A DNA stretch of 64,000 nt from the IMG/VR virus record IMGVR_UViG_3300024999_000029, positions 1 to 64,000 of that record; one strand, written 5' to 3'. The translations under genes and the position numbers were made by a program. This document shows, piece by piece, positions 18,753-61,600 of this stretch. How positions within the stretch are numbered: the stretch's first letter is position 1; each line of letters opens with the position of its first letter. A model generated the notes under the pieces. It was not told the origin of the DNA and did no database searches. It worked only from the letters and a program-made list of their open reading frames with translations.

Positions 18753-18803
18753 ATTCTTCTCCTTTAAGTTTTATATTTTTTGTTTCAACATGAAATGAAA
18801 ATT

Positions 18804-19601
18804 TTATTGAAATATTGATTTTTGTAAGCCTACTCCTGCAAGGGTTTCACTTTTCACAATTATTTCTAGTATGCGATTTTGAGCAATTTTATAGTAATTT
18901 TCATCTAATTCAAACCCTATGTAATTTCTGCTTGTATTTAAGGCGGCAATAGCAGTTGTTCCTGAACCTATACAATTATCTAAAACCGTTTCACCTTTGT
19001 TTGTGTAGGTGTTAATTAGCCATTCGCACAACTCTACTGGCTTTTGAGTAGGGTGCAAAGATATTGATGGATGAGGTTTTGAAAACTCTAATATAGATGT
19101 CGGGAATTTCATATCTCCTTTAGTTTCAACACATTTGAAATCTCCATAATTATTATTTTGCAAAACAGCATCATTCATCTTGCCCACAACACTACCTTTT
19201 TTATGACACGGATTACCTTTAATCTTTTGTGGATTATATATTGGTTGTTTTTTATAAAATACCATTATGTCCTCATGTTCCCTTAATGGCTGTTTATTAG
19301 CGTTTAAAAATCCACTTGATAAAACTTTCTTCCATATCAAATTATATCTATGTATTTTTTTGTTTGACAACATTGTCTCTGCAGTAAATTTATCTTGACC
19401 AAATAAAACTATTGCTCCATTATCTTTAATAATCCTTTCATACTGCTCCCATAGTAGTTGATAAGAAATTATTGTATCCCACTTGTTTTTTGTAGTTACT
19501 CCATAAGGTAAGTCACAAAGAATCATATCTATTGATTTATCGTCTATAAGTTTCATACCTTCTAAACAATCTTGTTTATATATCTTGTTTAACTTAATCA
19601 T
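18804..19601 (-). CDS. Orphan beta-class N6A/N4C DNA methyltransferase
   Basis: DCLEGM, ILCDLPYG (motif IV) before HPTQKPVEL and DNCIGSGTT (motif I); no adjacent restriction endonuclease. Confidence 0.9.
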   Translation of the reverse strand: MIKLNKIYKQDCLEGMKLIDDKSIDMILCDLPYGVTTKNKWDTIISYQLLWEQYERIIKDNGAIVLFGQDKFTAETMLSNKKIHRYNLIWKKVLSSGFLNANKQPLREHEDIMVFYKKQPIYNPQKIKGNPCHKKGSVVGKMNDAVLQNNNYGDFKCVETKGDMKFPTSILEFSKPHPSISLHPTQKPVELCEWLINTYTNKGETVLDNCIGSGTTAIAALNTSRNYIGFELDENYYKIAQNRILEIIVKSETLAGVGLQKSIFQ

Positions 19602-19655
19602 TTATGCCTCACTATTTTATATTTTAGTTCATTAAGATAAAACGAGAATTTTGTG

Positions 19656-19796
19656 TTAATCTATAGTAATAAAAGCCATTGCCGACATTAAAAATGCTAC
19701 TCCAATTTCAACTTTATTAGGGTTATACCCAAAAAACAATGCAGTAAATAATCCTAGCCAATATACAATAAAAAATACATTTAAAAATTTTCTCAT
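19656..19796 (-). CDS. Small two-helix membrane protein (46 aa, not in ORF track)
   Basis: AAGGAG RBS; MRKFLNVFFIVYWLGLFTALFFG...VAFLMSAMAFITID; flanked by sites 19636 and 19811. Confidence 0.55.
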   Translation of the reverse strand: MRKFLNVFFIVYWLGLFTALFFGYNPNKVEIGVAFLMSAMAFITID

Positions 19797-20340
19797 TTCT
19801 TTCTCCTTTCTATAAAAATCCGATTTCATTGAGATTTCTAATTTTCAAACCTTACTCCCACAAGGGTTTCAAATTCGGTAGTAATTTTAATTTTCACAAT
19901 TTCATACAAATATGCTACATCTATATTATTTCTATAATCCAATGCGTCTTCATAATTATTATAAAAATATGCTTTATTTATATTTGTTGTTGGACAGCCA
20001 TACTCATTTAGATATTCATTTTCGCCAATATATTTAATAGCATATTTTACTTCTTCTGATTTTTCTTTCATTATTTTCTCCTTCGTTTAGCAGGTTACTT
20101 TTGTAGTATAAGCATTTAGGTCATTTGGCGTTTTATAATAAATGTTGTCTTGGTATGGGAATGTCGGATAATTTGGGTAACTTAGATAAAATGGGTATAT
20201 GACATTTTTATTATCTTCAAATTCCTCTGTTGTCGTTGTTTCTCTTATTAATTTCCCTTCGTTATCATATTCTTTAATGTTGGTTACTTTTTTCATAGCT
20301 TCCTCCTTTTATATTTAATTTAAACGAAAGTCTTATTTTA

Positions 20341-20748
20341 TTAACCGTTTCTACCTGCACCATATCCTGAATCAATATCTGCAAATCCATTATCCACATT
20401 TACAGCATTTATGGCTTCAATTATTCCATCAGAAAAATCACTATAATCAACATCATAATCAGGTTCACCATCTGACTCATCAATATCATCACCATCACCA
20501 AAAAATATAAAATCAGAATCAATATTTTCTTTAACATAATTTTCTGATGGCGTAAGATCCACTCCTGCCCAATCATATTCAAATAATCTACTACTTTTTA
20601 TCTCTGATAAAAGCTCTTCTCCTGTATATGTGTCATATCCATATTTATCTATTATTGGTTGTGCCTTTTCTTTATCTTTGACCCTTGCAAATACAGCTAT
20701 AAAACTACTAGAGCTTGAATTTGTTACAAAATCTGTGCGTATTTTCAT
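20341..20748 (-). CDS. TNSSS-motif protein 4
   Basis: Starts MKIRTDFVTNSSSSSF; ATGA overlap with upstream gene. Confidence 0.8.
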   Translation of the reverse strand: MKIRTDFVTNSSSSSFIAVFARVKDKEKAQPIIDKYGYDTYTGEELLSEIKSSRLFEYDWAGVDLTPSENYVKENIDSDFIFFGDGDDIDESDGEPDYDVDYSDFSDGIIEAINAVNVDNGFADIDSGYGAGRNG

Positions 20749-21203
20749 ATGTTTGTTCTCCTTTTATATTTCATAAATTTATGCCAATTAGTAAATTTAC
20801 TTCTTATTTCATCCATGATTTTATCTTCACTTAAATCAAATTTGTTAAAAACATATTGTATATATTCGCTATCATATAACTTCCTTCTGCGCTTGTTAGC
20901 CTTTTTAACTTCCGCAAACACTTCATCTCTTGTGATTTCTCTGGTTTTTAATAAATAGTCTGCCATTTCGCTTTGAGAATACATTGTAAAATTACAAATT
21001 GGACAACTTTCTTCTGCTATAAAATAACTATCTTCTTCATCATTTTTATAATTTTCCAGCAAATGCTCTTCGCAAAACGAGTGTTCGTTTACACATCTTC
21101 TTAACCACTCTGGAAAATCCCATGTTGTTTCTTCATCTCCGCATATTTCACAAATATAACTCGAACTACTGGAATTTGTAACAAAATCTTTTCTGAATTT
21201 CAT
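20745..21203 (-). CDS. TNSSS-motif protein 3, with Cys/His motifs
   Basis: Starts MKFRKDFVTNSSSSSY, then CEIC, C..EH..C, CPIC. Confidence 0.8.
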   Translation of the reverse strand: MKFRKDFVTNSSSSSYICEICGDEETTWDFPEWLRRCVNEHSFCEEHLLENYKNDEEDSYFIAEESCPICNFTMYSQSEMADYLLKTREITRDEVFAEVKKANKRRRKLYDSEYIQYVFNKFDLSEDKIMDEIRSKFTNWHKFMKYKRRTNI

Positions 21204-21634
21204 TATTCGTCCTCCAAAATTATAAAATTCTCTTTATCTTCGGCAAGTTCATGTATCATATTTGAACAATATGTATCATTATGATCTACGCTTTTCCTTA
21301 AAATTGTAAACCCATCTTCGATATATTTGCTTGCATTATTATATAGTTTTGATAAATACTCATCGTCTTTTATTATTTTTTCAACTGTGTCGCAGTTTCT
21401 CCATCCATAATAATCAATAAAGTACTTATTCCACTCTTCTTTTGTTGAAATTTTTTCTCCTGCTGTTGTATCATTATCTCCCTCTGTAAACAAAACCTTT
21501 TCAATCAATCTTGAATAATTATTCAAAAACGGATATTTTTTAATTGTTTCTTCATCAATTTGTGGTAATTCTTTATACGCAACCACGAAACTACTTGAAC
21601 TACTATTAGTCACGAAATCACTTCTTATTTTCAT
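21203..21634 (-). CDS. TNSSS-motif protein 2
   Basis: Starts MKIRSDFVTNSSSSSF. Confidence 0.8.
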   Translation of the reverse strand: MKIRSDFVTNSSSSSFVVAYKELPQIDEETIKKYPFLNNYSRLIEKVLFTEGDNDTTAGEKISTKEEWNKYFIDYYGWRNCDTVEKIIKDDEYLSKLYNNASKYIEDGFTILRKSVDHNDTYCSNMIHELAEDKENFIILEDE

Positions 21635-21636
21635 AG

Positions 21637-22026
21637 TTACCTCCTCTGATCACAATAACCGAAAGTATATGGTATTTTATATTTATTTTCAAAAACATCT
21701 TCAACTAAAGACCAATTAAATCTACAACAAGTATTATTATCAATTACATAAAATTGTTGTTCTTCTGGAAGATTTGTGTCTCCATAATTATCTTTATTAA
21801 TTTCTTTGCCTGTTTTTACAAACAATGAACAGCCAATATCTTCATTGTTTAATATCCTTGAAATATTAAAATCCTCATCAATCTCTTCTTTGGTAAGCCA
21901 ATCATATGTTTTGTAATAAAAATCTTTAAATGCTCCATTAAATAAATCTTCTAAACTAATATTTTTAGCGGATATAATAAAACTACTTGATGATGAATTA
22001 GTTACAAAATCCTGCCTAATCTTCAT
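21637..22026 (-). CDS. TNSSS-motif protein 1 (true start probably ATG 22026)
   Basis: GAGGAG RBS precedes ATG at 22026, giving MKIRQDFVTNSSSSSF like its paralogues. Confidence 0.8.
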   Translation of the reverse strand: MKIRQDFVTNSSSSSFIISAKNISLEDLFNGAFKDFYYKTYDWLTKEEIDEDFNISRILNNEDIGCSLFVKTGKEINKDNYGDTNLPEEQQFYVIDNNTCCRFNWSLVEDVFENKYKIPYTFGYCDQRR

Positions 22027-22726
22027 ATAACCCTTTCTCCTCTCTATCACTAAATTTAAATGTCCACCCTTTATGTTGTTTTCTTTTACCTTTTAAACAA
22101 TCAGATACATTAGAATTAATTAAGTCATTTTGCCTACAAAATTCTCTAACATTTGTAAATGTAAAACTTTCATTACTTGGAGATATGGCGATTATTTCTT
22201 TTAATTTATTGGTAAAATTACAATTTATATAGTTTGTAACCCATATACATGTATCTTTACTATAAACTTTGTTATTACTACCCATTTGTTTGATATCTTT
22301 ATCTAGTTGTAATAGATGTTCATTAAAGAGTTTTTCATTATATTCTTCTATTTGTTTTATATCTTTAATAAAATTCTCAAAACATAACCACTCTTGACAA
22401 ACAGTTACTCCTTTTTCGCCATATCTTTCATAAGTTGGATGGATTTTATTGTAACATCTTGTAAGCATTGATTTCCAAATAGAATATTCATGAGGATAAT
22501 CTTTTTTATTATGACATCCTAGATAACCCACTCCTACTACTGTGGGATAATTTTTATCAACAATATGCCCTTTATTTATTTGAGTAGAATTTGCATACGC
22601 TTTATATTTTGTTTTTATAAATTCTACTTCATAAATAAGATTCCTGTTTTTATCTTTATCTATTATTTGTAACACAATAAATTCTCCACTTCTATTGCTT
22701 GAATATACTTTTCCAACTTCAACCAT
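22016..22726 (-). CDS. Free-standing HNH-like homing endonuclease with NUMOD1-like tail
   Basis: YSIWKSMLTRCY, YERYGEKGVTVCQEWLCFENF, QLDKDI, YSKDTCIWV..N, CLKGKRKQHKGWTF. Confidence 0.8.
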   Translation of the reverse strand: MVEVGKVYSSNRSGEFIVLQIIDKDKNRNLIYEVEFIKTKYKAYANSTQINKGHIVDKNYPTVVGVGYLGCHNKKDYPHEYSIWKSMLTRCYNKIHPTYERYGEKGVTVCQEWLCFENFIKDIKQIEEYNEKLFNEHLLQLDKDIKQMGSNNKVYSKDTCIWVTNYINCNFTNKLKEIIAISPSNESFTFTNVREFCRQNDLINSNVSDCLKGKRKQHKGWTFKFSDREEKGLYED

Positions 22727-23804
22727 TATAAAAATTCCTCTCTATTCTATTACATAATGTAATCTCATTTACAAATGGGCATCCTCCACCACAACTATTT
22801 CTATCTACACATTTTTTGCATGAATATCTCAAACTATTTCTAAATCCTTCAAAAATACCGCTATTCCATGCTTCTTTAATCGTATATTTATTTAAGTCTA
22901 CAAGCCATTTGCTATCTTGATTACCAAAAGAACAAGGCATCATATTCATTTGTGCATCTATGTAGGCTGAATATCTCGCTCCTTCACAAAAATCCATGCT
23001 ATCCCTATTAATTTTTTCTGTGAAATTAATAATTCCACTACAAGAGCAGCTATCAAAACCAATTTTAAAGTCTACATTATTATCATCTATGAGTCTAAAA
23101 AATTCTTTTACTCGCTCATCTCCTACTTTTAATACATTTTCTTGACTTCCTAGCCCAACAGGCTTATGCATTAGGAATATAACTGCATTAATGCCTTTGT
23201 CAAAACTATTATTTCTTAATTTATTTATTGCTTCGTTTATTGTATTACTTCCTAGCACATAATGAATATTGACCTTCATCCCAGAATCTATAAACATTTT
23301 GATTGCTTTTCTTGTGTACTCACTACGATATTCACTTACAGCCACAGCCCCACAATATTGTTTAGTGATTCTTACTTCTTCATCAGTTAACCCCAATCCA
23401 GAAGTAGTATAATTAGGAATAATATTATTTTCTCTGCAATATTTTACGAACTCTTCAAATTGTTCATGCTTATTAACATCTCCTCTACCACCGAGAGCCA
23501 CCTGAAATGAATGTCCTTTTAATTGGTTAATGATAGTTTTGAAATTTTCTAATGTCATATTGGGTTTTTGAATATGTAATCCATCTTGATAGCACTCAAT
23601 ACCACTTTTAACACACAATCCTGATAATCCATGTATACACGTTGACATGATTCCAATATCCACTAATTCAGGCAGATAGCTCATAAAAGGATCAATTCCA
23701 GTATCCTCACCTTTTTCATTTATGACACCAGACCTCATATAGAATCCAGTTTTCGGATTAAACATTGATATAAATTTATTTTTCTTATCAATTTTTTTAA
23801 TCAT
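22719..23804 (-). CDS. Radical SAM protein with SPASM domain
   Basis: C-x7-C-x6-C-YQ cluster motif, VALGGRGD, TTSG, C-terminal CEGA...PCSF...CKKC-x5-CGGGCP. Confidence 0.85.
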   Translation of the reverse strand: MIKKIDKKNKFISMFNPKTGFYMRSGVINEKGEDTGIDPFMSYLPELVDIGIMSTCIHGLSGLCVKSGIECYQDGLHIQKPNMTLENFKTIINQLKGHSFQVALGGRGDVNKHEQFEEFVKYCRENNIIPNYTTSGLGLTDEEVRITKQYCGAVAVSEYRSEYTRKAIKMFIDSGMKVNIHYVLGSNTINEAINKLRNNSFDKGINAVIFLMHKPVGLGSQENVLKVGDERVKEFFRLIDDNNVDFKIGFDSCSCSGIINFTEKINRDSMDFCEGARYSAYIDAQMNMMPCSFGNQDSKWLVDLNKYTIKEAWNSGIFEGFRNSLRYSCKKCVDRNSCGGGCPFVNEITLCNRIERNFYNG

Positions 23805-24080
23805 TTATATCTCCTCTTTTTTATATTTTTGATAAAAAGCACATTTGATTTAATTTAATTAGTATATTCATAATGAGAAACATCACAATATCCATGTATT
23901 AGTATTTCATTAAAACTCTTATCTGCATTTTCTGGCGTGATCATATGTGCGGTATATACTCCATTACTTGTTGTAAATAATAATAATTTGCTTCCTTTGG
24001 GATGCGTAACTTTTATACAAGAATAAATTTGTTCGTTAAACTTAACTCTCATATCCTCTCCTTTCTATCAAATACATGTT

Positions 24081-24491
24081 TTAAATTATATTGTTAATCT
24101 TACCTTCCACGCTAAAACAATTTCTATCATGCTCGTTTGGAGAAATTGTACAATTATCTAAGTTCATATGTATTGGAACTTGAATTTCCTTATATCCATA
24201 TCTCTTTGACCATTTTTTATTTATTCTTTTAGATTTGTGTTTTTTAGCCTGAACCATAACTACTCTTGTTCCGTTAGCTTCAATATTATAACCTCTTTGA
24301 TTATTTCCAAGTAATTTTTCTAGATCTTCGGGAGAGAATCTGCAACTTCCCATAGTCATTGTAAAACTTGGTTTCCAATCAACAGACATATTCGTTTCAA
24401 TTGATGGATTGATAACTTCAACAGATTCCAATACCTTTTCTCCTGTTGCTAGATTTATTAAACTAAGAGTGCCGTTTTTAATTCCAAACAA
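24081..24491 (-). CDS. Hypothetical protein
   Basis: Flanked by boundary sites 24066 and 24508. Confidence 0.6.
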   Translation of the reverse strand: MFGIKNGTLSLINLATGEKVLESVEVINPSIETNMSVDWKPSFTMTMGSCRFSPEDLEKLLGNNQRGYNIEANGTRVVMVQAKKHKSKRINKKWSKRYGYKEIQVPIHMNLDNCTISPNEHDRNCFSVEGKINNII

Positions 24492-24768: not shown

Positions 24769-27562
24769 TATTGCTCCTCCTTCCGTAAATGACGATTTTA
24801 TCTAAGTTCAAAACAATAATAATCACATATAATTTTTATATTTTCACTGATTGCTTCTGTTTCATCATAACAATCAATTGACCAATGAATATCAGAGCAA
24901 AATTCTTTTAAGTCCTCAAACATATATTCATAAGCAAATAATATTTCTTTAACATCAAAGTCAGCCAATAGCTCTTTATATGATTGAGTTATTCCCATTA
25001 GTGATTTAATAGCATCAATAATTTGTCTTTCATCGGTGACAGACATATTTTCTGTGTCTATTTTGAAATTACTATAATCTTCATAATTTCGGAACATTAA
25101 AACTCTCATAATACATCCTTTCTAAGTCAAATAGCTTTTCACTGAACTTCAATTTCCTCAATAGATAAACTAGCAACATCAGATCTAAGTGCTTCATTTT
25201 CGATATAACTCAAAGCCTTTTCTAAACTATCATAAATTGCAAGTATTTGACCATATTCCCAAACTAAATAAACTTTCAAGGCGAATTCTCCTTATAAAAT
25301 ATGCGTTTCATCGTGTTTCTTAAATTTGTAACCCTTGTGGCTGTAGGGCTGTAGCATTAGCCATCTTTTATATTTTCACTATATTAACAATTTGTGTAGC
25401 ATAATATTTATATTTTAAGTTTGTACCCTCATTCAATCTTTCTACTAGAGATTCTTGGATTTTTTCAATTAAATCGCTGGTTATTTCTTCATCTATATAG
25501 ATGATCGTATTAAACAAATCTGGATTCTCATCACCATACGCTGCATAGGCTATAAAATATTTCTGTTCCATACCTACTCCTTTCAATGATATCTCTAATT
25601 TATTGTAATTTTTACCGCACATTGGACAAAAGTTAATTTTAATATCTGATAATTCTAACTCATCGTCGGCAATTAAATTACCATTTCCATCAATATAAAC
25701 ACCTTCACTGCCGTTGCCCATTAAATAATCTCTTGAATCTACATCTACGCTACAATATACACATATATCTTCCATAAAATATCTCCTTTCCATAAAATGC
25801 AAGTTTCAAAGTATTAAATCATCAATAACTCCGCCAGTAAGCTCAAATCTATCGCAATTATTTAAGTTGGAGCAGCATATTTTATACATAAGATCATCTT
25901 CCAAACTACTTTTTGCATGTTTGCATCTAAAACTAGGGTATACTGGACAAGGCAATTCTTCAAAAACTAGTTTCACTGGCTTGCTATCTGAAGGTTCATA
26001 TATAATGTAAGTCATATTTTCATCCATTAACAAACCTAAATCCTTGTCTTTCATATCTCTCTCCTTCCAATAAATCACAATTTTTATATAATTATTTGCC
26101 TACCATTTGTGATAATTGTTGTAATATATTTTGTATAGCAAAGTATTGCGGGTTCACAAAAGCAGTTATTGTATCTTGAAGATTGATTAAAATTACTACT
26201 GTTGGAGCTATTACCCCTATAAATGGAAGCAAACAAATTATCAGATACTCTGGATCACCCTCTCCTTCTTTCCATACCTTTATAGTTAATTTCCAAGATA
26301 TAATGGCAACAATTACTCCAAAAACCATCAATAATATATTTGTAATTCCGACAACATAAGATTGTTTCACAAACAATGGATATAAATTATCAACCGTAGT
26401 TCCTAACTTTATCGCAAGTTCTTTTAACATTTCTAAAAATTTATCCATTTCTTTCTCCCTTATCTTATTATATTTTTAATTATTAACATTTCTTTATCTT
26501 CAAATTCCACAATAACTTGATGTTCGCACTCATCACATTCATGTAAATCTTCTGAAAACTTACCTTTATACGGGCAATACTGCTTCCAATTCTTCTTTGT
26601 CATAACTATTTCGCATAAATGACTGTGTGGTATGTATTCCATTACAAGCACCTCTCAATAAAACCAATTTTTTAACGTAAATTTTCTATCTCAAATCTCT
26701 TTAGTTCTTCTAGCAGTTCATTATCTTCAAAATAAAATGGGTCTCTTTCTAACCCGCCTAACCAATTATTAATAAATTGTCCAAATCTCCAGTCAGGTAC
26801 TTTTCTCCAAACTCTTTCAATTTCACCCAAGAATGGCATTATTCTATTTGGATCTCTCACAAAATTACCTCCAATCATTTTATATTTTAGATTATAGGCT
26901 ATATATAAACTCATTACAAGTCATTTTTAAAAGAATGGGGGTAAATTATTACCCCAAAATAATCAAATTTTACGAATGCCCTAATTGCTCCCAATAATCA
27001 GCGTCTATTTTTTCTTTCTGTTGAATACTAAAGCCTTTGATATCATTGAAATTGAATACTATAACCATATAGCCATTGACTTCTTCTAAAGCTTTTTTAT
27101 TTGCAGATAATAGAACGCATAAAGCTTCCACCGCATCATCAATTTGCTGAGTGTTAACTAACAAAGAACAATTCGTTCTAAACATTTTTTAACCTCCTTT
27201 TAATTAAACGTCATTTCAATATGGCAGTGGTTATCACTAAGCGAAGACACTAAAATAGTTGAATTTCCAAACTTTATTCGCTTGCAATCTCCGTTAATAA
27301 CCTCTACTTTCTTTAATTCATCAATTGTCCCCACAATTTTGATTAATTGTCTGGCTAATTTTCTTTCAACAACATCTTTTTCAATCATTCCATCACCTCC
27401 TCGAAGTTAATAAACTCCAATTATTTTAAACGACTCACTTAAAGTGTATTTTATATTCAAAGGCTTTCGCCTGTTGCTTTTATTGTGACCAGTATGATCC
27501 TCTTAGCCTTTTCATTGTTGAAATGTAATTTTCTATGTATTTTTTGTAATTATAAGGCTCTT

Positions 27563-31585: not shown

Positions 31586-31595
31586 ATATTAAATT

Positions 31596-34501: not shown

Positions 34502-37253
34502 ATCTCTCTCCTTTATATGAAACCGAGATTTTATTTACTTTCTTTTATTCTTACAAAATATTCTTTACACAATTTTTCTTCACAAGGAATAGTTTCAATT
34601 ATTTTAAGCCATTCATTATTGTCATTCACCTTATCTTTATACTCTTTAATTAGATCATAAATAAAGTAAAATCCCTGTGCCATCCCAAGCATATAATATT
34701 TATGATCAGATGATTCTTGAAATATTTCTCTATGTATTTTTTCTGCTTCAGTACGTTTATAATAGTTTTTCATTTGCATCATTGGCTCTATATTCATTCT
34801 TAATAATCCTCTCTATAATATCAGTCTTTTATATATTCATTTACACATCCCTTACAAGTTGACCTGCTACATTCACCACAAAAATTCCTTGAGGATTCCA
34901 TCCCACTCCGCCGCCATGACATCCACCTACTTCATCAACAATATCTAATTCTTGTTCAAATATTTCATTTTCCATATTATCTCCTTAAATATGCTCAAAA
35001 TAATACCATTCTACAAGCCATTTTAAGCCACTTTTATTTGGTAGGCTGTATGATTTAACCTGCTGAAATTATGTGAATCATTCAACGTTAATAATAATCT
35101 CACTTTTACAATTGCAAAGTTCTATATAATTTATAATATCAAACGATTCTTCAGGCGTAGCAATTAATATATGTTGGTCTGGCAATTCTAATAATTTTCT
35201 AGCCAATTCATGTGAATCCATTTATATTTTCCTTTCCTTAATGTAATGTTTGATTCAAATTATTTGCAGTACTTTAATAAAATCAGTTCTATTAACAGAT
35301 ACCTCTCTATCTCCAATTTTTAACCATACAATGTCTTTATCTTTTGTAGTTTGTATTATTAATTTGCTAGTAGAAAGAACATTATAGCTATCACTCTCTA
35401 ATTTTAGTTCCATTTTAATATTCATATTTGATTCTCCTTTCTACAAAAGAAATATTTTAATTAGTTTTTAACCAAGGTGTCGGTATTTTATTTAACTTAT
35501 CAAAATTTGGTTCATATGTTGATAAAGTAATTTCTTTCATTTTAGGTAAATAATTTTTATCCATATATTCTGAAATTATTTGACAAGCTGTAGCCATTAT
35601 TTCTTCTTCATCCATATCGTTTACATATGTTTCTACCATAGGCAGTAAAGCACATTGTAATCGAAATAAGAAAAATTGATATTTATTTTTAAATTCGTCC
35701 ATATAATCCTCCTTGATTTGAATCAGACTATCTTTTATTTACAATCTTCACAATATACTTCACCATTCTTTTCTATTAGTGCTTCATTTTTGCATATGTA
35801 GCTCCCACATTTGCTACAAATAACTACTGATGCTTCTAATGATTTTACTGCATCTAGCGGATCATCATAAATGCCCTCAGTAATACTCTCTGGATAAGCA
35901 CAAAAATTTGCTTTATATCCCTCTGATGAAGAATCTGAATAATAAGTCAACTCTACTCTCATGTCAGATTCTTCATTTATTCGTAAGATTAATTCATGTA
36001 AGTTTCCCATAATTCCTCCCTAGATACTATTTCTTGTCATGTTTTACTCGCTTTCTCAAAATCCTCAATTGCTTGTATAGCTTCTTCTTTAGTACAATGA
36101 TATTCTTCCATATAATACATAACTGAAATCATAAAATCATTATATTCTGGTGAATATTCTTTCAACATTGATTCATTCATATAATTTCTCCTCTACTTAA
36201 AACTATCATTTATTGTTTTTATATTTTTCATATGTAAATGATTTTTTATTATCCCAATCTTCAATTAAATCAGTTCTCATCTGCATCATAGTTCCTTGTC
36301 CCCAAGCGATTCTACATAATATATTCATATCCTCATATTTCAAACAAAAATGATAATTTTCAAATGGGTTATCTTCATCTATGAGACACTTGTGTTTATC
36401 AATAGCGTATTCATAGACATCTCTAAACAACAAAGTGAAATCTGCTTCTGAAAACTGATAATTTTTAGGAAAGTATAATATTTCTTCATTATCAATGAAG
36501 TTGTTTTGTTTTAAATGGTTATAAATACTATTCATAATATTGTCTCTTTTTTGTGATAAACACAGCTTATCATTTTCGAGTTGCTCTATTATTTTATTCA
36601 TAGTCTTTATTATTTCTTCACCCGCCAGTTTTTTCATATTTGCCCTACTTTCTTTAAAATTACTATTTTATCATAAATTTCGTTTTTGAACGCCTACTCT
36701 CGTAAGGGTTACAAAGTTGAAAAAGTCTAACATTTCATTATTGTATATATTTTATGGGAGCTACCATTAATTCTCGATGTATAATGTCATAAACTTTAGA
36801 GTGAGTGATTGATAAAAGGATTCCAATGAGAATGTCAATTATTTCAACTTCCATATAAGCTTTCTTAGTATCAATAGTGGCATAAAATATAATTTTATTA
36901 GTCTTAATTTCATATCTATTTATATCAATAGTGCTGCATATATGTATAAACGCACAATTCCTTATAAATAATTTTTGATAATCATCTTCAAAATCTTCAA
37001 TATACATAGATATAACTTCATCTATAAATGCTTTATAATTCATTTCCATAAACACAAACATACCTAGATTTTCGTCTTCACATTTTTTAGCCTCTAAATA
37101 CTTTTTGTATTTGGGATTATTTTTGGCAATCATATCTGCTAACATTTGTAGCTCACTTACAGTGAGTTCATTACTTCGGTCAACATTCTCTTTCATTTCT
37201 TTCATATTAATTTTCATTCTTGTTCTCCTTAATTTTTATTTGAAATGATGCTT

Positions 37254-51270: not shown

Positions 51271-52222
51271 AATTTTCTCCTCTTAATGGACAATCTTTAT
51301 CTCTTATATCTTCTACTCTATTCACAAATTGTTGCCCAGATACTGCTCCCTTTATTTTGCAATAATATCTATCGCTTAAAAAATAACACTCTCCACAATT
51401 TTTAGGTAACTCATCCACTACGATTTCTCTTATTTTCATATTGCCTTACCTTTCTTAATAAACTTTCACTTTTATCTAATCCCTATATGTTCGATTGTGT
51501 TTCCGCATTGAGTACATTCCACAATCACTTGTTTTCCACCATCATAATAATCCCAAGGTTTAATATTTATCTCTTTGCCAGATTTTTCAAGGTCAATTGA
51601 ATTATCATATTCAACCCGTTTTATTTTCGATTTTGCTCCGCATTTTTCGCACTTTATAGTAAATCCTTTATCCACATTCTCACTCCCAATCAAATTTTTC
51701 TTTTATATAAACTTTGATTTTCCACTTGCATATACTTTAAAAATCTATCATATATTTCATCTTTTACACTATAGCCAATTTTAATTGCTGCAATTAAAGT
51801 ATCTTCAGTACTTATATTCAAACTTTTTGCTTGTTCCACTGTATTATGAAAAATTGGATCATTTTGATATAATTTTAGCAATTCATTATCATTTTCTATT
51901 ATTTCACTTATATCTCTCATTTTATTTTCCTCCATTTCTGCAACCCTACTCTCCGTAAGGCTTCAAATTAATATTTCCATATAAAACTGTGATTTTATGG
52001 CATTTTATATTTTTCTATTTCTCTTAACATTGGGATAAAATTATCATCTATTTTGGTTAAAAATTCATCCCTAAAATGCTCTATTGTCATATCTGGTGTT
52101 ATGTATCCTAATTCTAAATTATGCTTTAAAAATGCAAACAATTTATTAATGAATTCTTGTAATTTTTCTGAGTTTTCCATATATTCCTCTCCTTTCTAAT
52201 TTTATAAAATATCCTTTTCATT

Positions 52223-54225: not shown

Positions 54226-54864
54226 ATGGCAACTAACCGAATAACCACATTAAGACTTAGCAAGAAAATGGAACAAGAAGATTTGGCGAAAATACTAGAT
54301 AAATCCCAAAGTTCGATATCTATTTATGAAAAAGATATTAGAAAAACACCAGTTGAAGTGCTTGAAAAGCTTGCAGATATGTTTAGTACAACTGTAGACT
54401 ATTTATTAGGCATTACCGACATAGAACAAACGCCCGATAATTTAATAGGAATGAATGATGTAATAAAAGTACCCATTATTGGTACAATTCGTGCAGGAAG
54501 CCCCATTTTCGCACAAGAGAACGTGGAAGATTATTTGCCTTTACCAAGAGATCATTCAATCAATCATAAAGACAATTTCGCTTTGAGAGTGATAGGAGAT
54601 AGTATGATTGAGGCTGGTATACAACATGGTGACACATTATTAGTAAAGAAGCAAGAGTGGTTAGACACAGATGGAGATATAATGGTGGTAGTAGTTAATA
54701 GTGACAGTGAAGCAACTGTAAAGCGTATGCACAAAGATAAGGACGGAATAGTACTGCAGCCAGCTAATAAAAATTATCGACCTTTAGTTATAAATAAAAA
54801 AGATTTAGATAGTGTAAAAATACTAGGTAAGGTTATTAAAATACTTCTTCGGGACATAAAGTAA
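54226..54864 (+). CDS. LexA/CI-like repressor (XRE HTH + S24 peptidase)
   Basis: HTH N-terminus; IRAG cleavage site, FALRVIGDSM, ATVKR; the only convincing plus-strand gene. Confidence 0.92.
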   Translation: MATNRITTLRLSKKMEQEDLAKILDKSQSSISIYEKDIRKTPVEVLEKLADMFSTTVDYLLGITDIEQTPDNLIGMNDVIKVPIIGTIRAGSPIFAQENVEDYLPLPRDHSINHKDNFALRVIGDSMIEAGIQHGDTLLVKKQEWLDTDGDIMVVVVNSDSEATVKRMHKDKDGIVLQPANKNYRPLVINKKDLDSVKILGKVIKILLRDIK

Positions 54865-54890
54865 AAAGATGCATATGCATCTTTTTACTT
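54859..54890. terminator. 32-bp perfect palindrome between convergent genes (bidirectional terminator candidate)
   Basis: AAGTAAAAAGATGCATATGCATCTTTTTACTT. Confidence 0.75.
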
Positions 54891-54898
54891 CCTCTTTC

Positions 54899-55846
54899 TT
54901 ATATATATTCCTTAATATCTTTTCTTGTCTGATACTGATATTTTATATCTTTTCCAAATCTTTCATTGATTTGTTCATATTCTGCTTTTTCTAAATCTCT
55001 ACCTAGTTTAGCTTTTAATTCTTTTGCCATTTGAATCATTCCACTAATCCATATATTTCTAGGATTCAAATGAGGATTTTTATAATCTTCAGCTATTCTT
55101 TTTATCCTATGGTTTATTACTATAGGGTTAAGCTTCCCATTATTATCTCCATGTATTGTTGGTCTAACAACATAACCAGTATCATGTATAGGCATATATT
55201 CTCTCCTGCTAGACGTTCCCTTGCCGTTATTTGGATAATATATATCTATATCTAGCGCATCTTTTATTATTTTAATAGTATTGTCTTTTACTTCTAAGAT
55301 GCGTTCTGTACCATCATCTCTTGTTAACATTAATAAATTTCCATCAACATCTGTTTCTTTTAAATTTACTAATTCCTCAAAATGTACTCCACTCACTCCT
55401 TCAAACAATAATGCTATTAAAACTTTATCTTGTGGATTTTTGCAAATGTTTAATATTTTATTTAATTCTTCTTCATCTTTTATAAATCTTTTTCTTTTTG
55501 CAATTTGATTTACATATCTGTCCATATTGTTGGAATTATACTTATCAAATAAATTAATCTTTGTGTCTAAATATCCATGTTGTATGCAGAAAGCTACGTA
55601 TTTTTTCAAATAACTTCTTTGAGAATTGGCTGAATTTGTAGAGCCTAATTCCAATTGATTCATTAGCATTGCAACTTCATCATTATTAAATTCATAAATG
55701 TCTTTATTTAATTGACTCTCCATACTATAAGTTTTTTCAAATAAATACCTTACCATCTTTTGAGTGCTTTTAGCATAGTTTAATGTAGTAAATCTTTCTT
55801 TTAATTCTTTATTATACTTTAACTTTTCTTTTAAATTAATACTCAT
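54899..55846 (-). CDS. Tyrosine-recombinase-fold protein lacking catalytic residues (SPbeta MrpR/YopR-like repressor candidate)
   Basis: SAM-like N-domain; LLFEGVSGVHFEELVNLK lacks the catalytic Arg; PRNIWISG replaces HxxR; no LGH. Confidence 0.7.
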   Translation of the reverse strand: MSINLKEKLKYNKELKERFTTLNYAKSTQKMVRYLFEKTYSMESQLNKDIYEFNNDEVAMLMNQLELGSTNSANSQRSYLKKYVAFCIQHGYLDTKINLFDKYNSNNMDRYVNQIAKRKRFIKDEEELNKILNICKNPQDKVLIALLFEGVSGVHFEELVNLKETDVDGNLLMLTRDDGTERILEVKDNTIKIIKDALDIDIYYPNNGKGTSSRREYMPIHDTGYVVRPTIHGDNNGKLNPIVINHRIKRIAEDYKNPHLNPRNIWISGMIQMAKELKAKLGRDLEKAEYEQINERFGKDIKYQYQTRKDIKEYI

Positions 55847-55862
55847 TATTTTTTACCTCCTA

Positions 55863-57164: not shown

Positions 57165-57197
57165 TCCCTGCTTTTATTTTTATATTTTTACTTTACT

Positions 57198-57427: not shown

Positions 57428-57434
57428 CAATATA

Positions 57435-57605
57435 TTACTTATTCATATTTTCCTTTGCAAACTCTATCATTCTTTTAACCATTTGTCCACCTATCTTACC
57501 AACTTCTCTAGCCGTAATATCTCCATTATAACCATCTTTTAAGTGTACTCCAACTTCACTAGCGACTTCATACTTTAGTGAATCTAATGCCTTTTTACTA
57601 GCCAT
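57435..57605 (-). CDS. Alpha/beta-type small acid-soluble spore protein
   Basis: ALDSLKYEVASEVG, ITAREVGKIGGQMVKRMIE; GGAGG RBS before ATG 57605. Confidence 0.92.
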   Translation of the reverse strand: MASKKALDSLKYEVASEVGVHLKDGYNGDITAREVGKIGGQMVKRMIEFAKENMNK

Positions 57606-57642
57606 ATGACACACCTCCATATTTTATTTTTTGATGTTTAGA

Positions 57643-57672
57643 TAGTATTTGCGATTTTTATAAAATAAATAC
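57643..57672 (-). promoter_or_regulatory. Possible SigG-type forespore promoter
   Basis: GTATT-18 nt-AATACTA versus consensus GYATA...CATACTA. Confidence 0.45.
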
Positions 57673-58674
57673 AGGGATAAAATTAGAAGATGTAATCTAA
57701 CCATCTTCTAATACTTCATCTCCTTTAAAATAAGGCTCTATTATATCTGTAATTTCTAAGACTTCAAAATCTTCGTTTTCAATCATTGTTGGATATTTAT
57801 TTTTTACAATATTTATTGCCTTAATCCTGTTTTCAGCATATGATACTAATATATTAAATCTTGGCTTTTTAAAACATATTACATATTTCAATTATTTATC
57901 ACATCCCTCCATCTAACACATTTTTCTGAATAAAGTTAATAAAGTTTTCTTTTGATTGTTTTGGATCATTTGGATTAATTGCCTCACATAATTCGTGCCA
58001 AATTATCTGTTTTTTAGATATATTTGATGCGAATTCTATCAAATTGTTTTTTGCCTCCATAGGATTTTCTGTGTTTAATATTGAAACTAAGCTCCACCAT
58101 GAAAAATACAGTCTGTGAGGGTTATCTAACGTGGCTTGTAGTGTGTTGATTTGTGCGTTTAACTGATTCATAAACAAAAACCTCCAAAACTTTATTAGTA
58201 TATGTTGATTATATGTCATAATTAATCATATTAAGTCATATTCTGTTCAAGCGGTATATTTTTGATTGTGAAAATATTAAAAATTGTCGTTTGCATCAAA
58301 AAACGTGCAACATGCAACAAATGCAATATATAAAATAATGTCGAATAATGTAGTTTGTGTAATCTGCAATTGTTTTATATTTTCATTTATTCGTGCAAAT
58401 CGTTATTTAAAACCACTAATCCCTCACCATGTAATTTAGCATCTGCTATTTGCTTTTCTAATACTTCAACATAACTAACACCTTTATTGATCCTTCTGTG
58501 TAGTGCATTTTCCACGTAAGGTTGCATTATTAGTAGTTCTTCATTATCTTTTATATGTTAATTGATTCAATATTGATATCTCTTGCTGCCATCTACTATT
58601 TGCAAATTCTAATTTAGTCATTTATTTTGCACCTCGCTTTTATATTATATTTTAGTTTTAATAAATTCGTTATT

Positions 58675-61600
58675 TCAACACAATTCTTTAAAACATTCTT
58701 TAAAAGTATCATTAGAAATTTCTATCCATCCTAATTTATCAGATTCAAGTCTTACTTCTCCGCCAAGGAATCTATAATTTTTATCTTCGGGAGTATGCCA
58801 TATGGTATTTTCTTTTATATTACTTCGTTTTTCAGTTTCAAAACCATCTTCATCATAAATTGGTACTACATATGCCTTTATGCACTTATATTCACTCATG
58901 TTTCATATTTCCTTTCTATTCCCATTTTAACTTTTGCCCACACTCACAAATGTTTAATCCTTGCCAATGTTTATAATATCCATCTCCTATACTTTCACTT
59001 AATTCTGCTCTACACGATGAACATAGAGCGGGACTCCATGGCTTTATTATTGGATTAGTTGGCATTTGTTTATTCAATGCCTCAATGGCTAAATCAATAT
59101 GCTCTGAAGTTCCATAATAACCACCATGTTCGTCAATAGCTTCCTTTTCACTTTTTAGTTTTTCTATAGCTTCCATAATATCCATATTGGTTTCCTTTCA
59201 ACATAAAATCTATTTTTTGTTTAATTTATCTCTGTAATTTATAAAATCTTTTGAATTAACCAACTTGCTATATTCTTCATTATTCATTTCAAGCCAATTC
59301 TGCAAAGTCATTCCTGTGAATCTAATATGCCATGTCAATATTTTAAATTTTATATCATCATTCATAAAATCACTCCTTCTGAACCTTGTATCTCTTGGTG
59401 CTGTAGGGCTTAAATCACGACAAAATACTGGTTTCATCGTGTTTTGTCATACATGAAATAACCTCTAACTGCCTTTTTAAGTTTACTTTTAATATTAATA
59501 TCTTCATTTCTTTCCTCTAAATATAAAACTCGGAAATTACTTAATTTTGTTAAGTCCAATATTTCATATATTTCTTTTTCAAAATCTTCTAATATTATAT
59601 CTAATTTATTTTTGAAATCTTCAAACGTATTAAATCCAAATATAAAATCATTAAAACCGCCCGACTTATCATAAAAGTTAAATCCAAATAATAAATATCT
59701 AAATTCAGTATTCATATAACTGCCTCCCTCTTGTTAAAATGTTGGTTTTACTTTAATTTTTCTAACGTAATTGCTTCCTCTTTTAATCTTTTTACAGTTG
59801 ATTCATAGCTCCCAATTAAAAATTTAAGTGTACTCAATCTGTCTATAATAGCCTCATTTTTGGTTTTATGATAACCTGAAATATCTTTCTCTGTGTCTAT
59901 TTCTTTTTCCCGTATTTCACCATCATCAGTTATCTGAAAATATAACATTTTTCTCCCCTTTTTTAAATGTTGGATTTATCGTTTAATAATATTTATCTTT
60001 AATCTTTTGCATAAGTGGTAAATAATCTTCTTTCATGTTCTTAGTGAACTGTAATAAATCTATAATAGTCATCTCTGGTTTTAAATAACCGAGTTTTAAA
60101 TTATGATTTATAAATTCTTCCAATTGTTCAATATTTTCTATAGGTTTTTTCATACTTATAATACCCTCCTCTCGATCAAACGTTAGATTTATTCAATTAT
60201 TAGTTATCTTTAAATACATCTTTTATTTTTCTATGGTAATCATCCAAAATTCTTTCTTGTTTTTTAGTTAATTGGTCTTTAGGTATTTTTTCAAGTTTTA
60301 TCAAATCGTTTAAAGTATACACGCCTCTTAATTTTCTTATTATAAATTTAAATAGCTTACTTATATATTTAATAATTGATATAAATACCTTTTTGATATA
60401 ATCAACTAGTAATCCAATAATTACACCAACCACTAATAAAATAATATCATCTATATTTCTACTAAAAAAATCTATAATAAACATTTCAACCTCACTAAAT
60501 AAATTATATGAAATCCCATTTCATAGTAATATTAAATCATATTACATATGTCTTCTTCTGATTCAACAATTGGCTTTACTGATTCCCATGCTTTTAACAT
60601 AGCTTCTTTAATTTCTTCAACTGAAACAAATTCTAAATATTTTTTAACTGTATATTTATTTCTACCTGCCGTATCTAATATTCTATACTCATAATCATCA
60701 CCATGAGTGATATATTGAATATTTCTTTTTCTCTTTGGTAATAGCCCTATACTGGTTATTCTAAAATTGTTTGTATAATCGCTAAACCTTATATTTATAA
60801 AAATTTTATCGCCATTTTCTCTTTTAATTTCATGATCGTAATCTTTATACATATTAACCTCCATTGCCTCAATTTTACCATAATAATACTTTCAATCAAA
60901 TAGATTATTCATTTAAAGTTTTTCCATTCTTACAGTTCCACACTTAGGACAGGAATATAAACCTACCTCTGTTATACAACTGTTATAACCATTATCCCTA
61001 TCTACAACAAAACTACCTTTAATCCTTTCAAAATTTTCACTATTTTTATCATTATCGGAATCATATTCATCGTCCCAATAATAATTCTTTTTATACCCAC
61101 ATACACATTTCAAAACACTTAGCCCCCTTCTGTTATCTGTTATAATTAAATATTATTTTTTATTTTATTCATATCCATAAGCTTCCCATCCATCTTTCTG
61201 ATGAAAGTTAATCCACATTACATATGCTGGCTCATCATCACCTGTTAATCTAATTCCATTAATGCTTTCTTCGTCTTTATCATACATATCAGATTCTTCG
61301 GCAGTTAGCATATGTAGAGGCATATAACTATAAACATCATCTACTATATACCATTTTTTATAATTATTAGAAACTACAAGTATTGGTTTATTTAAATATT
61401 TATTTTTTATATCTTGTTTTGAAAGTTTAATTAATATATTCATAAAGTCCTCCATCATCTGTTACCTCAACATACTATTATTGATTTCAATCCCATCTCA
61501 AATTCTCTACATCTTGAAGTGGACGTGCTATTAATTTATAAACATCTTCTATAATTTCTATTTTAGACATTGTATCTATATTGATTATATCTAAAAATTT

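Follow-up and report, generated by a model that had tools for sequence, protein, structure and literature searches.

In phage SPbeta a repeated intergenic element, present in about ten copies, provides the operators of MrpR (ten MrpR ChAP-seq peaks), and the MrpR family has lost its recombinase function in SPbeta (PMC10516654). The SroF box of phi3T has been solved; it is a 26-bp AT-rich A-tract read by a monomer (bioRxiv 10.1101/2025.11.27.690993). In T4-type phages, promoter-early stem-loop (PeSL) cassettes are composite repeats that mediate cassette shuffling (PMC2839356, PMC4122927). Here we describe a GC-richer repeated site (GC site) that lies in register with an AT-rich junction palindrome (7-6-7 site) in an uncultured temperate SPbeta-like groundwater phage. 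The window is the whole stretch of 64,000 nt that was analysed, positions 1 to 64,000 of the 349-kb record IMGVR_UViG_3300024999_000029.

The GC site resembles the SPBRE/SroF boxes (operators of MrpR, also YopR or SroF, a master repressor with a recombinase fold) in occurring within a related phage supergroup, with an MrpR homologue present, as about ten intergenic repeat copies per genome near ribosome-binding sites, and in having first come to light in silico, as a repeat. The boxes already known are AT-rich A-tracts (the SPBRE derived here is an AT-rich 20-mer with ATACA-N7-TGTAT), whereas the GC site, as a candidate operator, is GC-richer, dyad-like and paired with a second site in every copy except that at 88642. 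As in PeSLs, a short composite repeat made of a GC-richer dyad beside an AT-rich element borders a large phage's small ORFan genes, and related genomes carry the unit between genes that are not homologous. Unlike a PeSL, the phage unit carries no sigma-70 consensus promoter, its dyad neither covaries nor forms a stable stem-loop and lacks a terminator tail, its two parts occur in either order, and no crossovers were seen inside the GC site. REP/BIME elements share with it a short imperfect palindrome with a GTAG/CTAC tetranucleotide, an intergenic position, both orientations and an occasional inverted pair (relative G002). The GC site differs from them in numbering tens of copies, not hundreds, in residing in phage genomes, and in the absence of a RAYT gene, the sole Y1 transposase being a truncated IS200-type fragment; no bacterial genome with many copies was found among the first 120 matches listed.

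The GC site and its 7-6-7 partner in the window

The core of the GC site is CCTAC-N5(6)-YAAGGGTT, within a partial dyad, AACCCT-N9-AGGGTT, whose outer arms extend to TTGAAAC/GTTTCAA, giving a length of about 21-27 bp. The right arm is far better conserved than the left, T19, A20, C21 and A29 being invariant across 34 copies, and the inner arm positions are kept yet asymmetric (AC...CA). The centre, of 5-6 bases, varies from copy to copy. With at most one mismatch, CCTACNNNNNYAAGGGTT was matched four times in the window, against 0.03 +/- 0.17 expected from 100 dinucleotide-preserving shuffles, and the GC site matched no Rfam family or CRISPR repeat. The partner, ATRAAA-N6-TTTYAT, has 33 exact copies compared with 3 for a back-to-front control; with up to one mismatch, 130 intergenic copies occur at spacing 6 versus 6-28 at spacings 3-10. 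Both sites are real, and the GC site is conserved.

All six GC copies of the preliminary description were recovered, in position and in letters. They are given below with their partners; + means that CCTAC comes first, and the ORF boundaries are rough gene calls.

18790..18807, unstranded: 7-6-7 partner of copy 1; holds the stop codon of the methylase ORF; centre-to-edge distance 29 nt
18826..18849, + strand: GC copy 1, CCTAC-TCCTG-CAAGGGTT; within the last ~15 codons of methylase ORF 18804-19601 (- strand)
19812..19829, unstranded: 7-6-7 partner of copy 2; immediately before the ribosome-binding site of ORF 19656-19796 (- strand); 29 nt
19847..19871, + strand: GC copy 2, CTTAC-TCCCA-CAAGGGTT; overlaps the 3' end of ORF 19838-20071 (- strand)
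25294..25311, unstranded: 7-6-7 partner of copy 3; 29 nt despite the flipped GC site
25327..25351, - strand: GC copy 3, CCTAC-AGCCA-CAAGGGTT on the - strand; intergenic
36654..36671, unstranded: 7-6-7 partner of copy 4, with one mismatch; 29 nt
36689..36713, + strand: GC copy 4, CCTAC-TCTCG-TAAGGGTT; intergenic, flanked by ORFs 36206-36637 and 36738-37217 (both - strand)
51942..51966, + strand: GC copy 5, 6-nt spacer, TAAGGCTT; with its 7-6-7 site on one side and the ribosome-binding site of ORF 51690-51920 (- strand) on the other
51981..51998, unstranded: 7-6-7 partner of copy 5, on the GC site's opposite side; 28.5 nt; holds the stop codon of ORF 51995-52180 (- strand)
59387..59411, - strand: GC copy 6, weakest of the six, CCTAC-AGCAC-CAAGAGAT on the - strand
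59420..59437, unstranded: 7-6-7 partner of copy 6, with one mismatch; 20 nt

The gaps between paired sites reported earlier (17, 16, 16, 14, 14 and 7 bp) were reproduced once the extra base per arm used there was counted, and the reported overlap with coding 3' ends applies, on these rough gene calls, to 18826 (ORF 18804-19601) and 19847 (ORF 19838-20071). Copy 1 has orthologues at G000 185268 and G006 37798, and copy 2 at G006 39108. The weaker window copies, 51942 (6-nt spacer, GGC) and 59387 (two arm changes), both retain the partner-site geometry, and 51942 is supported by a conserved orthologue of equal total length at G006 57214.

Register and conservation of the composite

Over the whole record the copies number 13, with 8 in the 139-kb relative G006, and the combined unit occurs at about 10 gene junctions per ~175-kb genome in a clade of uncultured temperate SPbeta-like groundwater phages. 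For 17 of the 21 (10/13 in the record, 7/8 in G006), the GC dyad centre and the 7-6-7 edge are 29 bp apart, or 28.5 bp in a single copy. A 20-nt spacing forms a minor class of 2/13 record copies, and the copy at 88642 has no 7-6-7 partner. Since a random intergenic point satisfies a 27-31 nt distance in only 0.9% of cases, placement relative to the 7-6-7 sites is non-random. The register is unchanged by the orientation of the GC site (e.g. 18829 versus 25330) and is the same on either side of the 7-6-7 site (51945; G006 57214). Such orientation independence would be expected of a symmetric reader of duplex DNA and would not be explained by a reader of RNA sequence.

At the syntenic junction 36693 / 198574 / G006 53953 the unit is ~87% identical while the flanking genes are unrelated. 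The genes flanking the units are ORFans, and the small ORFan genes start 12-28 nt beyond the 7-6-7 site. More distant relatives have perfect 11-bp arms at a site 6-13 nt after a stop codon, and one of them has two inverted copies between convergent genes. The exact composite pattern with a full 7-6-7 site was found only in this phage clade in a scan of 241 million metagenome records, which points to a clade-encoded reader; the sequence was present only in DNA runs from groundwater. The composite site proposed in the preliminary description is thus borne out by a fixed geometry that is kept in relatives.

Regulatory reading and its alternatives

We favour, with a probability of roughly 40%, the reading that the GC site is a sequence-specific protein recognition site on duplex DNA, in register with the 7-6-7 site and controlling the adjacent small ORFan genes. 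It would be an operator- or activator-type site bound by a phage-encoded protein, which may cooperate with whatever acts at the adjoining 7-6-7 site, thereby setting the expression level of the small ORFan gene(s) just beyond it. If the first 7-6-7 arm served as a -10-like element, the dyad centre would fall at -42, the class II activator position, and the proximal outer arm would form a weak -35-like hexamer (copy 1: CTTACA, 16 nt, TAAAAT). The bound protein, its regulatory role and the placement at -42 are parts that we infer; of the functions first suggested, a second regulator target agrees best with the data. Sites of class II activators (CRP/FNR type; lambda cI at PRM), whose centres fall near -41.5, are comparable in their ~22-bp dyad, strict spacing to the core promoter, orientation independence and overlap with a weak -35. 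The GC site differs in having a presumed -10 that roughly half the copies match poorly, and in the reversed order at one locus.

Consensus sigma-A promoters are depleted ahead of genes behind 7-6-7 sites (4% versus 14%) and no good one lies near any GC site; with sigma-A promoters so scarce, extra factors are plausible, and a reading of the GC site itself as a sigma-A promoter is not supported. Several observations sit poorly with the regulatory reading. The first arm reads TAAAAT in 5/9 composite copies and not in the other 4/9, and the base after ATRAAA is T in 34/106 7-6-7 sites, so the -10 role is weak. In copy 5 and its G006 orthologue the GC site has the 7-6-7 site on one side and the ribosome-binding site on the other, copy 88642 lacks a partner, two loci have the 20-nt spacing, and a simple homodimer site would not usually have asymmetric inner arms. 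Part of the fixed spacing could also stem from the shared ancestry of a copied ~65-bp module.

The phage encodes three candidate DNA-binding proteins, two of them in the window:

54226..54864, + strand: CI/LexA-like repressor (HTH_3 + Peptidase_S24), candidate trans factor; the only + strand gene of its stretch
54899..55846, - strand: recombinase-fold repressor of the MrpR/SroF (YopR) family (Pfam PF22822 + PF22823), candidate trans factor

The third, of 349 aa, has a sigma-70 region-4-like HTH at its C-terminus (G000 86589-87638, 1 kb from copy 88642). The 54899-55846 protein is 28% identical to SPbeta YopR over 314 aa (E 4e-21) and matches PDB entries 8a0a, 8bj6 and 9rd5. Counting against the regulatory reading, the GC site is absent from both repressors' own control regions, namely the divergent region 53959-54225 of the CI/LexA-like gene and the region upstream of the MrpR-family operon, and SroF, which has been solved, recognises its AT-rich box as a monomer.

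A fairly unlikely alternative is that the ~65-bp unit (7-6-7 site, spacer and GC site) is copied between junctions in PeSL-like fashion and persists mainly as a homology patch at which general recombination swaps ORFan cassettes, the GC part needing no reader of its own. This would account for a unit that sits, in three genomes, at a syntenic junction between genes lacking homology, the ORFan character of the flanking genes, the spacer bases shared by unrelated loci (identical over 16 nt between 154047 and 198574) and the 2.3-fold enrichment of homology-block ends at 7-6-7 sites, and PeSLs offer a precedent for such shuffling (PMC2839356, PMC4122927). However, GC sites have no homology-block ends, most of the 30 clean indels in three genomes end at another motif, TTTTATATTTT, adjoining the ribosome-binding site (3/30 end at the 7-6-7 site), and the unit lacks the sigma-70-type promoter and effective stem-loop that define PeSLs. 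A homology patch also leaves unexplained an invariant core beside a free 5-nt centre and a centre distance that is kept when the GC site is flipped. Site-specific recombination, with the 7-6-7 site as crossover core and the GC site as accessory site or second core for a phage recombinase, appears improbable: of the proposed core-plus-accessory architecture like attI or res, the composite geometry holds, but the recombination role is not supported, as centres differ and no rearrangement ends in a copy. Both sites do have the arm-spacer-arm layout (7-7-7 beside 7-6-7) and conserved polarity of inner arm bases of tyrosine-recombinase sites (dif/cer, attI, res), the record holds 4-5 tyrosine-recombinase-like and 2 large serine-recombinase genes, 14-bp direct repeats border the pair at 146390-146440, which has a serine-recombinase gene ~400 nt away, one 210-nt indel falls exactly at a 7-6-7 arm/spacer edge, and hybrid 'half sites' join CCCTAC-NGCCA to an unrelated right half. 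Centres vary, however, among copies of both sites, and with differing central 5-6 bases in the GC site, a classical tyrosine recombinase would be kept from exchanging strands between copies. Shared blocks of the two half-genomes and G006 are all collinear, with no inversion or deletion ending in a GC site and no homology-block end inside one; contigs of 4 runs over 18300-24299 contain no strand-changing joint. No tyrosine- or serine-recombinase gene adjoins a window copy, the window's recombinase-fold protein belongs to the MrpR family, whose recombinase function is lost in SPbeta, and the phage serine recombinase is unrelated to the phi3T enzyme with att core CCTAC. Recombination at the 7-6-7 partner itself is weakly indicated by the enriched homology-block ends and the 210-nt indel, with the low count of clean indels ending there (3/30) speaking against it.

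An RNA-level intercistronic hairpin, which we likewise consider unlikely, would stabilise the 3' end of the upstream mRNA or the 5' end of the downstream one, or act as a factor-dependent terminator or attenuator, with the AU-rich 7-6-7 site as cleavage or entry site. Both orientations could form it, the sites lie within operons with no promoters close by, the perfect arms past stop codons and the inverted pair between convergent genes in relatives agree with it, and copy 5 folds at -12.3 kcal/mol (z -3.9). Yet copy 5 is the sole window copy of six whose transcribed RNA folds better than shuffles (z -3.9 to +1.5); across 34 copies the arm cells pair in 70.6% versus 71.8% after shuffling of columns, with a covariation score lower than in shuffles; and CCTAC to CTTAC changes break the transcribed-strand pair in the orthologous set 18829 / 185268 / G006 37798. 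The missing covariation and the five window copies no stabler than shuffles leave a hairpin unsupported, and the absent U-tract does the same for an intrinsic terminator, although the phage has ordinary hairpin-plus-U terminators, e.g. near 57400; nor does an RNA mechanism offer an evident reason for a distance fixed at 29 nt on either side. Among protein readings, a promoter for a phage-encoded sigma-like factor, with part of the GC site as -35 and the 7-6-7 arm as -10, would suit the fixed distance to that arm and the 349-aa protein encoded near copy 88642, but is highly improbable: the GC site is found either way round and to either side of the 7-6-7 site, as a polar promoter would not be, no region-2 match was found, and the region-4 match of the 349-aa protein falls under Pfam's cut-off. 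A narrower form of the favoured regulatory reading makes the GC site the operator box of the 54899-55846 repressor, the counterpart of SPBRE. The homologue is full-length and lies behind a 430-aa gene in the order of yopQ-yopR, the number of intergenic copies per genome recalls the ten ChAP-seq peaks of SPbeta, and G006, G009 and G010 have both homologues and GC sites. We nevertheless hold it to be decidedly unlikely, given the AT-rich, monomer-read boxes of the family, the GC-like sites of G005 and G008, where the homologue is absent, and the repressor operon without an upstream GC site.

The GC-richer site and its partner

The preliminary description had reported six copies of a GC-richer inverted repeat in the window, and all six were confirmed, at 18826(+), 19847(+), 25327(-), 36689(+), 51942(+) and 59387(-) (copies 1 to 6). 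The site (GC site) has the form AACCCTA - 7 - AAGGGTT with constant, non-symmetric inner bases AC...CA, and its core CCTACNNNNNYAAGGGTT, allowing at most one mismatch, matches the window four times against 0.03 expected. The centres differ between nearly all copies (e.g. TCCTG, TCCCA, TCTCG, AGCCA and AGCAC), and across 34 aligned copies, drawn from eleven contigs, conservation is far higher in the right arm (CAAGGGTTTCA) than in the left. The complete record, G000, holds 13 good copies, ten in the first ~174 kb and three in the second half, and a 139-kb relative, G006, holds eight, most of them at orthologous junctions.

The partner is an AT-rich palindrome, ATRAAA-N6-TTTYAT, here termed the 7-6-7 site. 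It occurs in 33 exact copies, versus three for the reversed control, and with up to one mismatch intergenic DNA has 130 copies at spacing 6 versus 6-28 at other spacings; the intergenic share of the record is 12%. About 100 copies are placed 12-28 nt before a minus-strand start codon, directly ahead of the ribosome-binding site, and they often contain the stop codon of the preceding gene.

Co-occurrence and spacing of the two sites, proposed earlier as a check, revealed a fixed register. The dyad centre of the GC site is separated from the nearer 7-6-7 edge by 28.5-29 nt in 10 of the 13 record copies and in seven of the eight G006 copies; of random intergenic points, 0.9% have a 7-6-7 edge at 27-31 nt. 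Two loci, one found in both genomes and the other being copy 6, have a distance of 20 nt, and one GC site stands without a partner. GC sites in the opposite orientation (25330, 346628, G006 22435 and G006 116237) keep this register, and so do 51945 and the orthologous G006 57214, where the GC site is on the opposite side of its partner; between these two orthologues, one additional centre base is compensated by one spacer base fewer. Among 241 million metagenome records, the exact composite pattern with a full 7-6-7 site was found only in this record, in G006 and in a handful of contigs of the same group. The pair is a genuine composite cis element, conserved and specific to this clade.

A wide distribution of the GC site was rejected: the looser pattern AACCCTAC-N5-CAAGGGTT matches 47 viral loci, about half of which are chance by our own estimate, and the non-coding, AT-rich matches belong almost entirely to the same groundwater phage group. 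Brochothrix phage A9 has one copy in an early intergenic region, without a 7-6-7 partner. Three more distant relatives, G003, G010 (loci L019 and L162) and G002 (L022), carry the GC site alone with perfect 11-bp arms, 6-13 nt past a stop codon, and G002 has, between convergent genes, two copies that face one another. Variant half sites, which keep CCCTAC-NGCCA and have TGCTGG, TGCTCA or TGCCAG in place of CAAGGG, occur at G000 245725(-) and 329200(+) and at about 7560 in G006; one of them is the orthologue of copy 88642, within an otherwise 85% identical stretch.

The phage and its two-copy record

In large temperate phages of Firmicutes-type hosts, tiny genes number in the hundreds, and their function and switching are little known. 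The record is a groundwater metagenome virus of 349,050 bp with 28% GC and the standard code, of which the window is the first 64 kb; in a read-run search the stretch was present in DNA runs of one groundwater study only. About 130 genes, tightly packed and nearly all on the minus strand, were called in the window with a simple script of our own, and these calls are rough. The DnaE protein shares 56% identity with DnaE of 130-kb Clostridioides phages, and the MrpR-like protein gives an end-to-end alignment with SPbeta YopR (28% identity, E 4e-21), which is why we regard the phage as large, temperate and SPbeta-like, with a host that is probably of Firmicute type. Two different repressor types adjoin in its lysogeny module (54226-57155).

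Features of the window
Replication module: RecD2-like helicase, DnaE, PD-(D/E)XK nuclease, DnaB-like helicase and AAA_24
DNA methylase
Thg1-like enzyme and NAD-dependent ligase
27389-27685, structured right-end DNA of the IS200/IS605 insertion
27686-28804, TnpB, 372 aa, intact-looking
28801-29016, TnpA (Y1 transposase, IS200-type), truncated, C-terminal half only
54226-54864, plus strand, CI/LexA-like repressor
54899-55846, minus strand, MrpR/SroF(YopR)-family repressor with recombinase fold (PF22822, PF22823; PDB 8a0a, 8bj6)
55863-57155, 430-aa phrog_5732 gene preceding the MrpR-like gene, in the order of yopQ-yopR of SPbeta

The record is collinear with itself. Its first ~174 kb and the remainder (~174-349 kb) are diverged copies in one gene order, matching at offsets of 157-180 kb with an identity of 65-98% in patches, and the 139-kb relative matches both halves. 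It thus looks like two diverged, collinear genomes of ~175 kb placed head to tail, either through an assembler's join of co-occurring relatives or as a genuine co-integrate. Consequently, the CheckV estimate of 99% completeness is to be read in this light, and the 13 GC sites amount to about ten junctions in one genome and three in its sister.

The IS200/IS605-type insertion (1,439 bp, 27589-29027) is absent from G006. Upstream of a tRNA-Cys gene (31511-31585(-)) lies a 525-nt GC-richer stretch without an ORF (31586-32110), which recurs at G000 192821-193260 with 88-94% identity and which no Rfam family matches at gathering score. A Thg1-like guanylyltransferase gene (38038-38874) adjoins a gene for an HNH protein (38886-39605), and in the second half-genome a CCA-adding enzyme lies beside an HNH-AP2 protein (G000 198607-200753), so that at both places tRNA-repair-type genes adjoin homing-endonuclease genes.

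RNA, promoter and recombination readings of the GC site

No Rfam model matched at the GC sites at either the gathering or the E-value threshold, and a known RNA family was therefore discarded. An intrinsic terminator is contradicted by weak folds and by the lack of a T-run after the site in either orientation; a consensus terminator scan called none of the six window sites, and terminator-like sites overall were not enriched (7 versus 5.0 expected). The phage does have ordinary terminators of the hairpin-plus-U kind. When transcribed RNA was folded, copy 5 beat its shuffles (z -3.9) and the other five did not (z -1.5 to +1.5), while in the 34 aligned copies 70.6% of arm cells paired versus 71.8% after shuffling, with a covariation score below that of the shuffles. 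A consistent RNA hairpin was rejected on these grounds; the GC site is conserved as sequence and not as pairing.

The consensus promoters of this phage are TTGACA-17-TATAAT. Sigma-A promoters precede 14% of genes without a 7-6-7 site and only 4% of genes with one, and within 130 nt of any GC site no good sigma-A promoter was found, the best match being 9/12. The string AACCCT...AAGGG is reminiscent of the T3 promoter; a T3/T7-type promoter was dismissed since most copies would fire antisense, and a search for a single-subunit RNA polymerase gave no match, a negative of little weight as its control gave none either. The extended motif ends in a GAAAC-like string, which brought a solitary CRISPR repeat or RNA anti-CRISPR into consideration, but no array was seen among the at least 120 bacterial loci listed from species-representative genomes. 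The bacterial matches listed are single copies, mostly in coding sequence for the Walker A motif of ABC transporters, and the Rfam CRISPR-DR models gave no match at the GC sites.

The preliminary description had favoured a core plus accessory site of attI or res type, or else the target of a second recombinase or regulator. The inverted arms around a 6-8 bp centre do recall tyrosine-recombinase sites, a resemblance of form only, and the record carries four to five tyrosine-recombinase-like genes and two large serine-recombinase genes; the window's own recombinase-like gene belongs to the MrpR family, in which catalysis has been lost in SPbeta (PMC10516654). The shared central region expected of dif-, lox- or attI-type partner sites is missing from the GC sites, no recombination products between copies were seen in the genomes and contigs compared, the two half-genomes and G006 are collinear throughout, and of 283 homology-block ends not one lies in a GC site. 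The attI/res reading is thus unsupported and unlikely; of the alternative target, the regulator part fits the reading that we prefer, in which a protein reads the site. Contigs of four runs over 18300-24299, a region that covers copies 1 and 2, showed no strand-changing joint, bearing in mind that contigs drop rare variants. Contig breaks at 18793 and 19794-19823 are edges of a block common with the second half-genome, and apparent skips in contigs (short sides, 88% likeness) stem from related methylase genes and so lend no support to site-specific joints.

Other mobile-element readings were rejected. For an integron attC, the motif letters misfit the RYYYAAC ... GTTRRRY boxes, and the tyrosine-recombinase genes lie away from the array. 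The att core of phi3T is CCTAC (PMC8270828); as an att site of a large serine recombinase the GC site fails, the phage enzyme being related to the Clostridia type and not to that of phi3T, and ten att sites per genome would make no sense. IS200/IS605 ends or a PATE-like derivative do not fit either, as the right-end hairpins of the insertion sequence look different and TnpA is reduced to a fragment. A miniature mobile element with target-site duplication is opposed by the flanks: only copy 146420 has direct repeats (14 bp), and the others have none longer than 8 bp. At that locus (G000 146368-146461) the pair follows a canonical terminator, lies between the repeats TTTGTTGTACCCCA and adjoins a serine recombinase gene (146846-148588(-)), an arrangement kept in G006 at 3817-3864; it may be part of an attP region. 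The matching place in the second half-genome holds a tRNA-Ala gene (320988-321062).

A weak recombination signal is seen at the 7-6-7 partner, where homology-block ends are 2.3-fold enriched (P ~ 1.5e-4, with non-independent ends). Relative to window 18793, a 210-nt GC-richer non-coding insertion at G000 185021-185232, unique in the record, sits exactly between the left 7-6-7 arm and the spacer; ARAGORN called no tRNA in it, though one end resembles a T-arm. Among 30 clean indels between the two half-genomes and G006, three end at a 7-6-7 site and most end at a third motif, TTTTATATTTT, beside the ribosome-binding site, and because of this the third motif together with the ribosome-binding site looks like the main seam of cassette exchange. 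In gene direction this motif reads AAAATATAAAA; it precedes the start codon by 10-20 nt in 26% of genes, on either strand (155 genes in G000; window example 18769-18779).

The composite unit itself is module-like. Unrelated genes (an ORFan versus a CCA-adding enzyme) flank it at the syntenic junction 36693 / 198574 / G006 53953, and the ~60-bp unit is nevertheless about 87% identical there; between 154047 and 198574, which are unrelated loci, 16 spacer bases are identical. Genes next to GC sites, downstream ones included, had no Pfam or PHROG match. The unit resembles the PeSL cassettes of T4-type phages as a junction module beside ORFans. PeSLs are defined by a sigma-70 promoter and an effective stem-loop (PMC2839356, PMC4122927), and the unit has neither the strong sigma-70-consensus early promoter (9/12 at best) nor the stable terminating or attenuating stem-loop, given folds like shuffles in five of six copies, no covariation and no U-tract. 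As to marking exchange junctions between close relatives, the observations are mixed: the flanks are ORFans and the unit is an identity island between unrelated genes, yet no block end lies in a GC site and most clean indels end at the other motif.

A predicted protein-binding element

The composite element is most likely regulatory protein-binding DNA. More specifically, we put at roughly 40% the probability that the GC site is duplex DNA read by a protein, in register with whatever acts at the 7-6-7 site. Such a reader would explain why neither orientation nor side matters, why the spacing is strict, why only sequence is conserved while the 5-nt centre is free, and why the element is restricted to one clade. 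If the first 7-6-7 arm served as a -10-like element (TAAAAT in five of nine such copies, a poor hexamer in the other four), the dyad centre, 30 nt upstream of the T of TAAAAT, would lie at -42, the position of a class II activator, and the proximal outer arm would supply a weak -35-like hexamer; a scan picked CTTACA, 16 nt, TAAAAT at copy 1. We infer this geometry: class II activator sites have dyads centred near -41.5 from a mapped start, whereas the GC site is at -42 only if TAAAAT is the -10 element.

The MrpR-like protein is one candidate reader. In SPbeta, MrpR has as its operators some ten copies of SPBRE, a repeated intergenic element (PMC10516654), which is a precedent, and the gene expected alongside an SPBRE-type operator is present in this genome. 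SPBRE, as we derived it from three MrpR-bound upstream regions (aimR, yopM and yopV), is however an AT-rich 20-mer with ATACA-N7-TGTAT, abutting the ribosome-binding site, and in the solved phi3T complex SroF is a monomer reading a 26-bp A-tract box (bioRxiv 10.1101/2025.11.27.690993). Compared with these AT-rich, asymmetric boxes of 15-26 bp, the GC site is a GC-richer dyad, and that it is an MrpR box is therefore very improbable. On the same precedents an AT-rich motif, which may be the 7-6-7 site, is a likelier target of the MrpR-like protein than the GC site. The divergent control region of the CI/LexA-like repressor gene contains no GC site, and operators in the repressor genes' own control regions were rejected, neither GC nor 7-6-7 sites being found there.

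The 7-6-7 motif also occurs in SPbeta (SPBc2, NC_001884.1 72343-91194, locus L258), at locus offsets 1326, 11345, 13731, 14543, 15256 and 16057. In the yop-yoq region, ATAAAA-N6-TTTTAA or TTTCAT stands just past stop codons and before ribosome-binding sites. The motif is unannotated in NC_001884.1, and we found no description of it in the papers cited here on SPbeta and phi3T. Judging from its presence there, the 7-6-7 site is an old, conserved feature of the SPbeta phage supergroup, open to study in a model system; with ATAAAA-N6-TTTTAW at the stop/start junctions of this model phage, the role of the partner site is testable at once in Bacillus subtilis.

Following the reading of the GC site as a protein target, the strict-register two-part site defines a small putative regulon of about ten junctions per genome, and it is a cis element testable by gel shift, DAP-seq or reporter fusions, for which no more than three or four proteins are candidates. 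A wider picture, which we consider a long shot, is that the two sites are the DNA side of an undescribed genome-wide control layer in SPbeta-like phages: some 60 junctions per genome would be read by one protein, which may be the domesticated repressor with the recombinase fold, and a second dyad-binder docked exactly 29 bp away would switch about ten of them; the pairs might then also be preferred seams of cassette exchange. If the pair marks such seams, the PeSL idea would extend beyond T4-type phages; if it marks none, it would be an ordinary though neat operator set of an uncultured phage.

A 349-aa protein encoded at G000 86589-87638(+) has a C-terminal helix-turn-helix like sigma-70 region 4, below the Pfam cut-off; region 2 was not found in it. 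Its gene opens a plus-strand gene block 1 kb before GC-site copy 88642 and has an orthologue near 243.6-244.7 kb.
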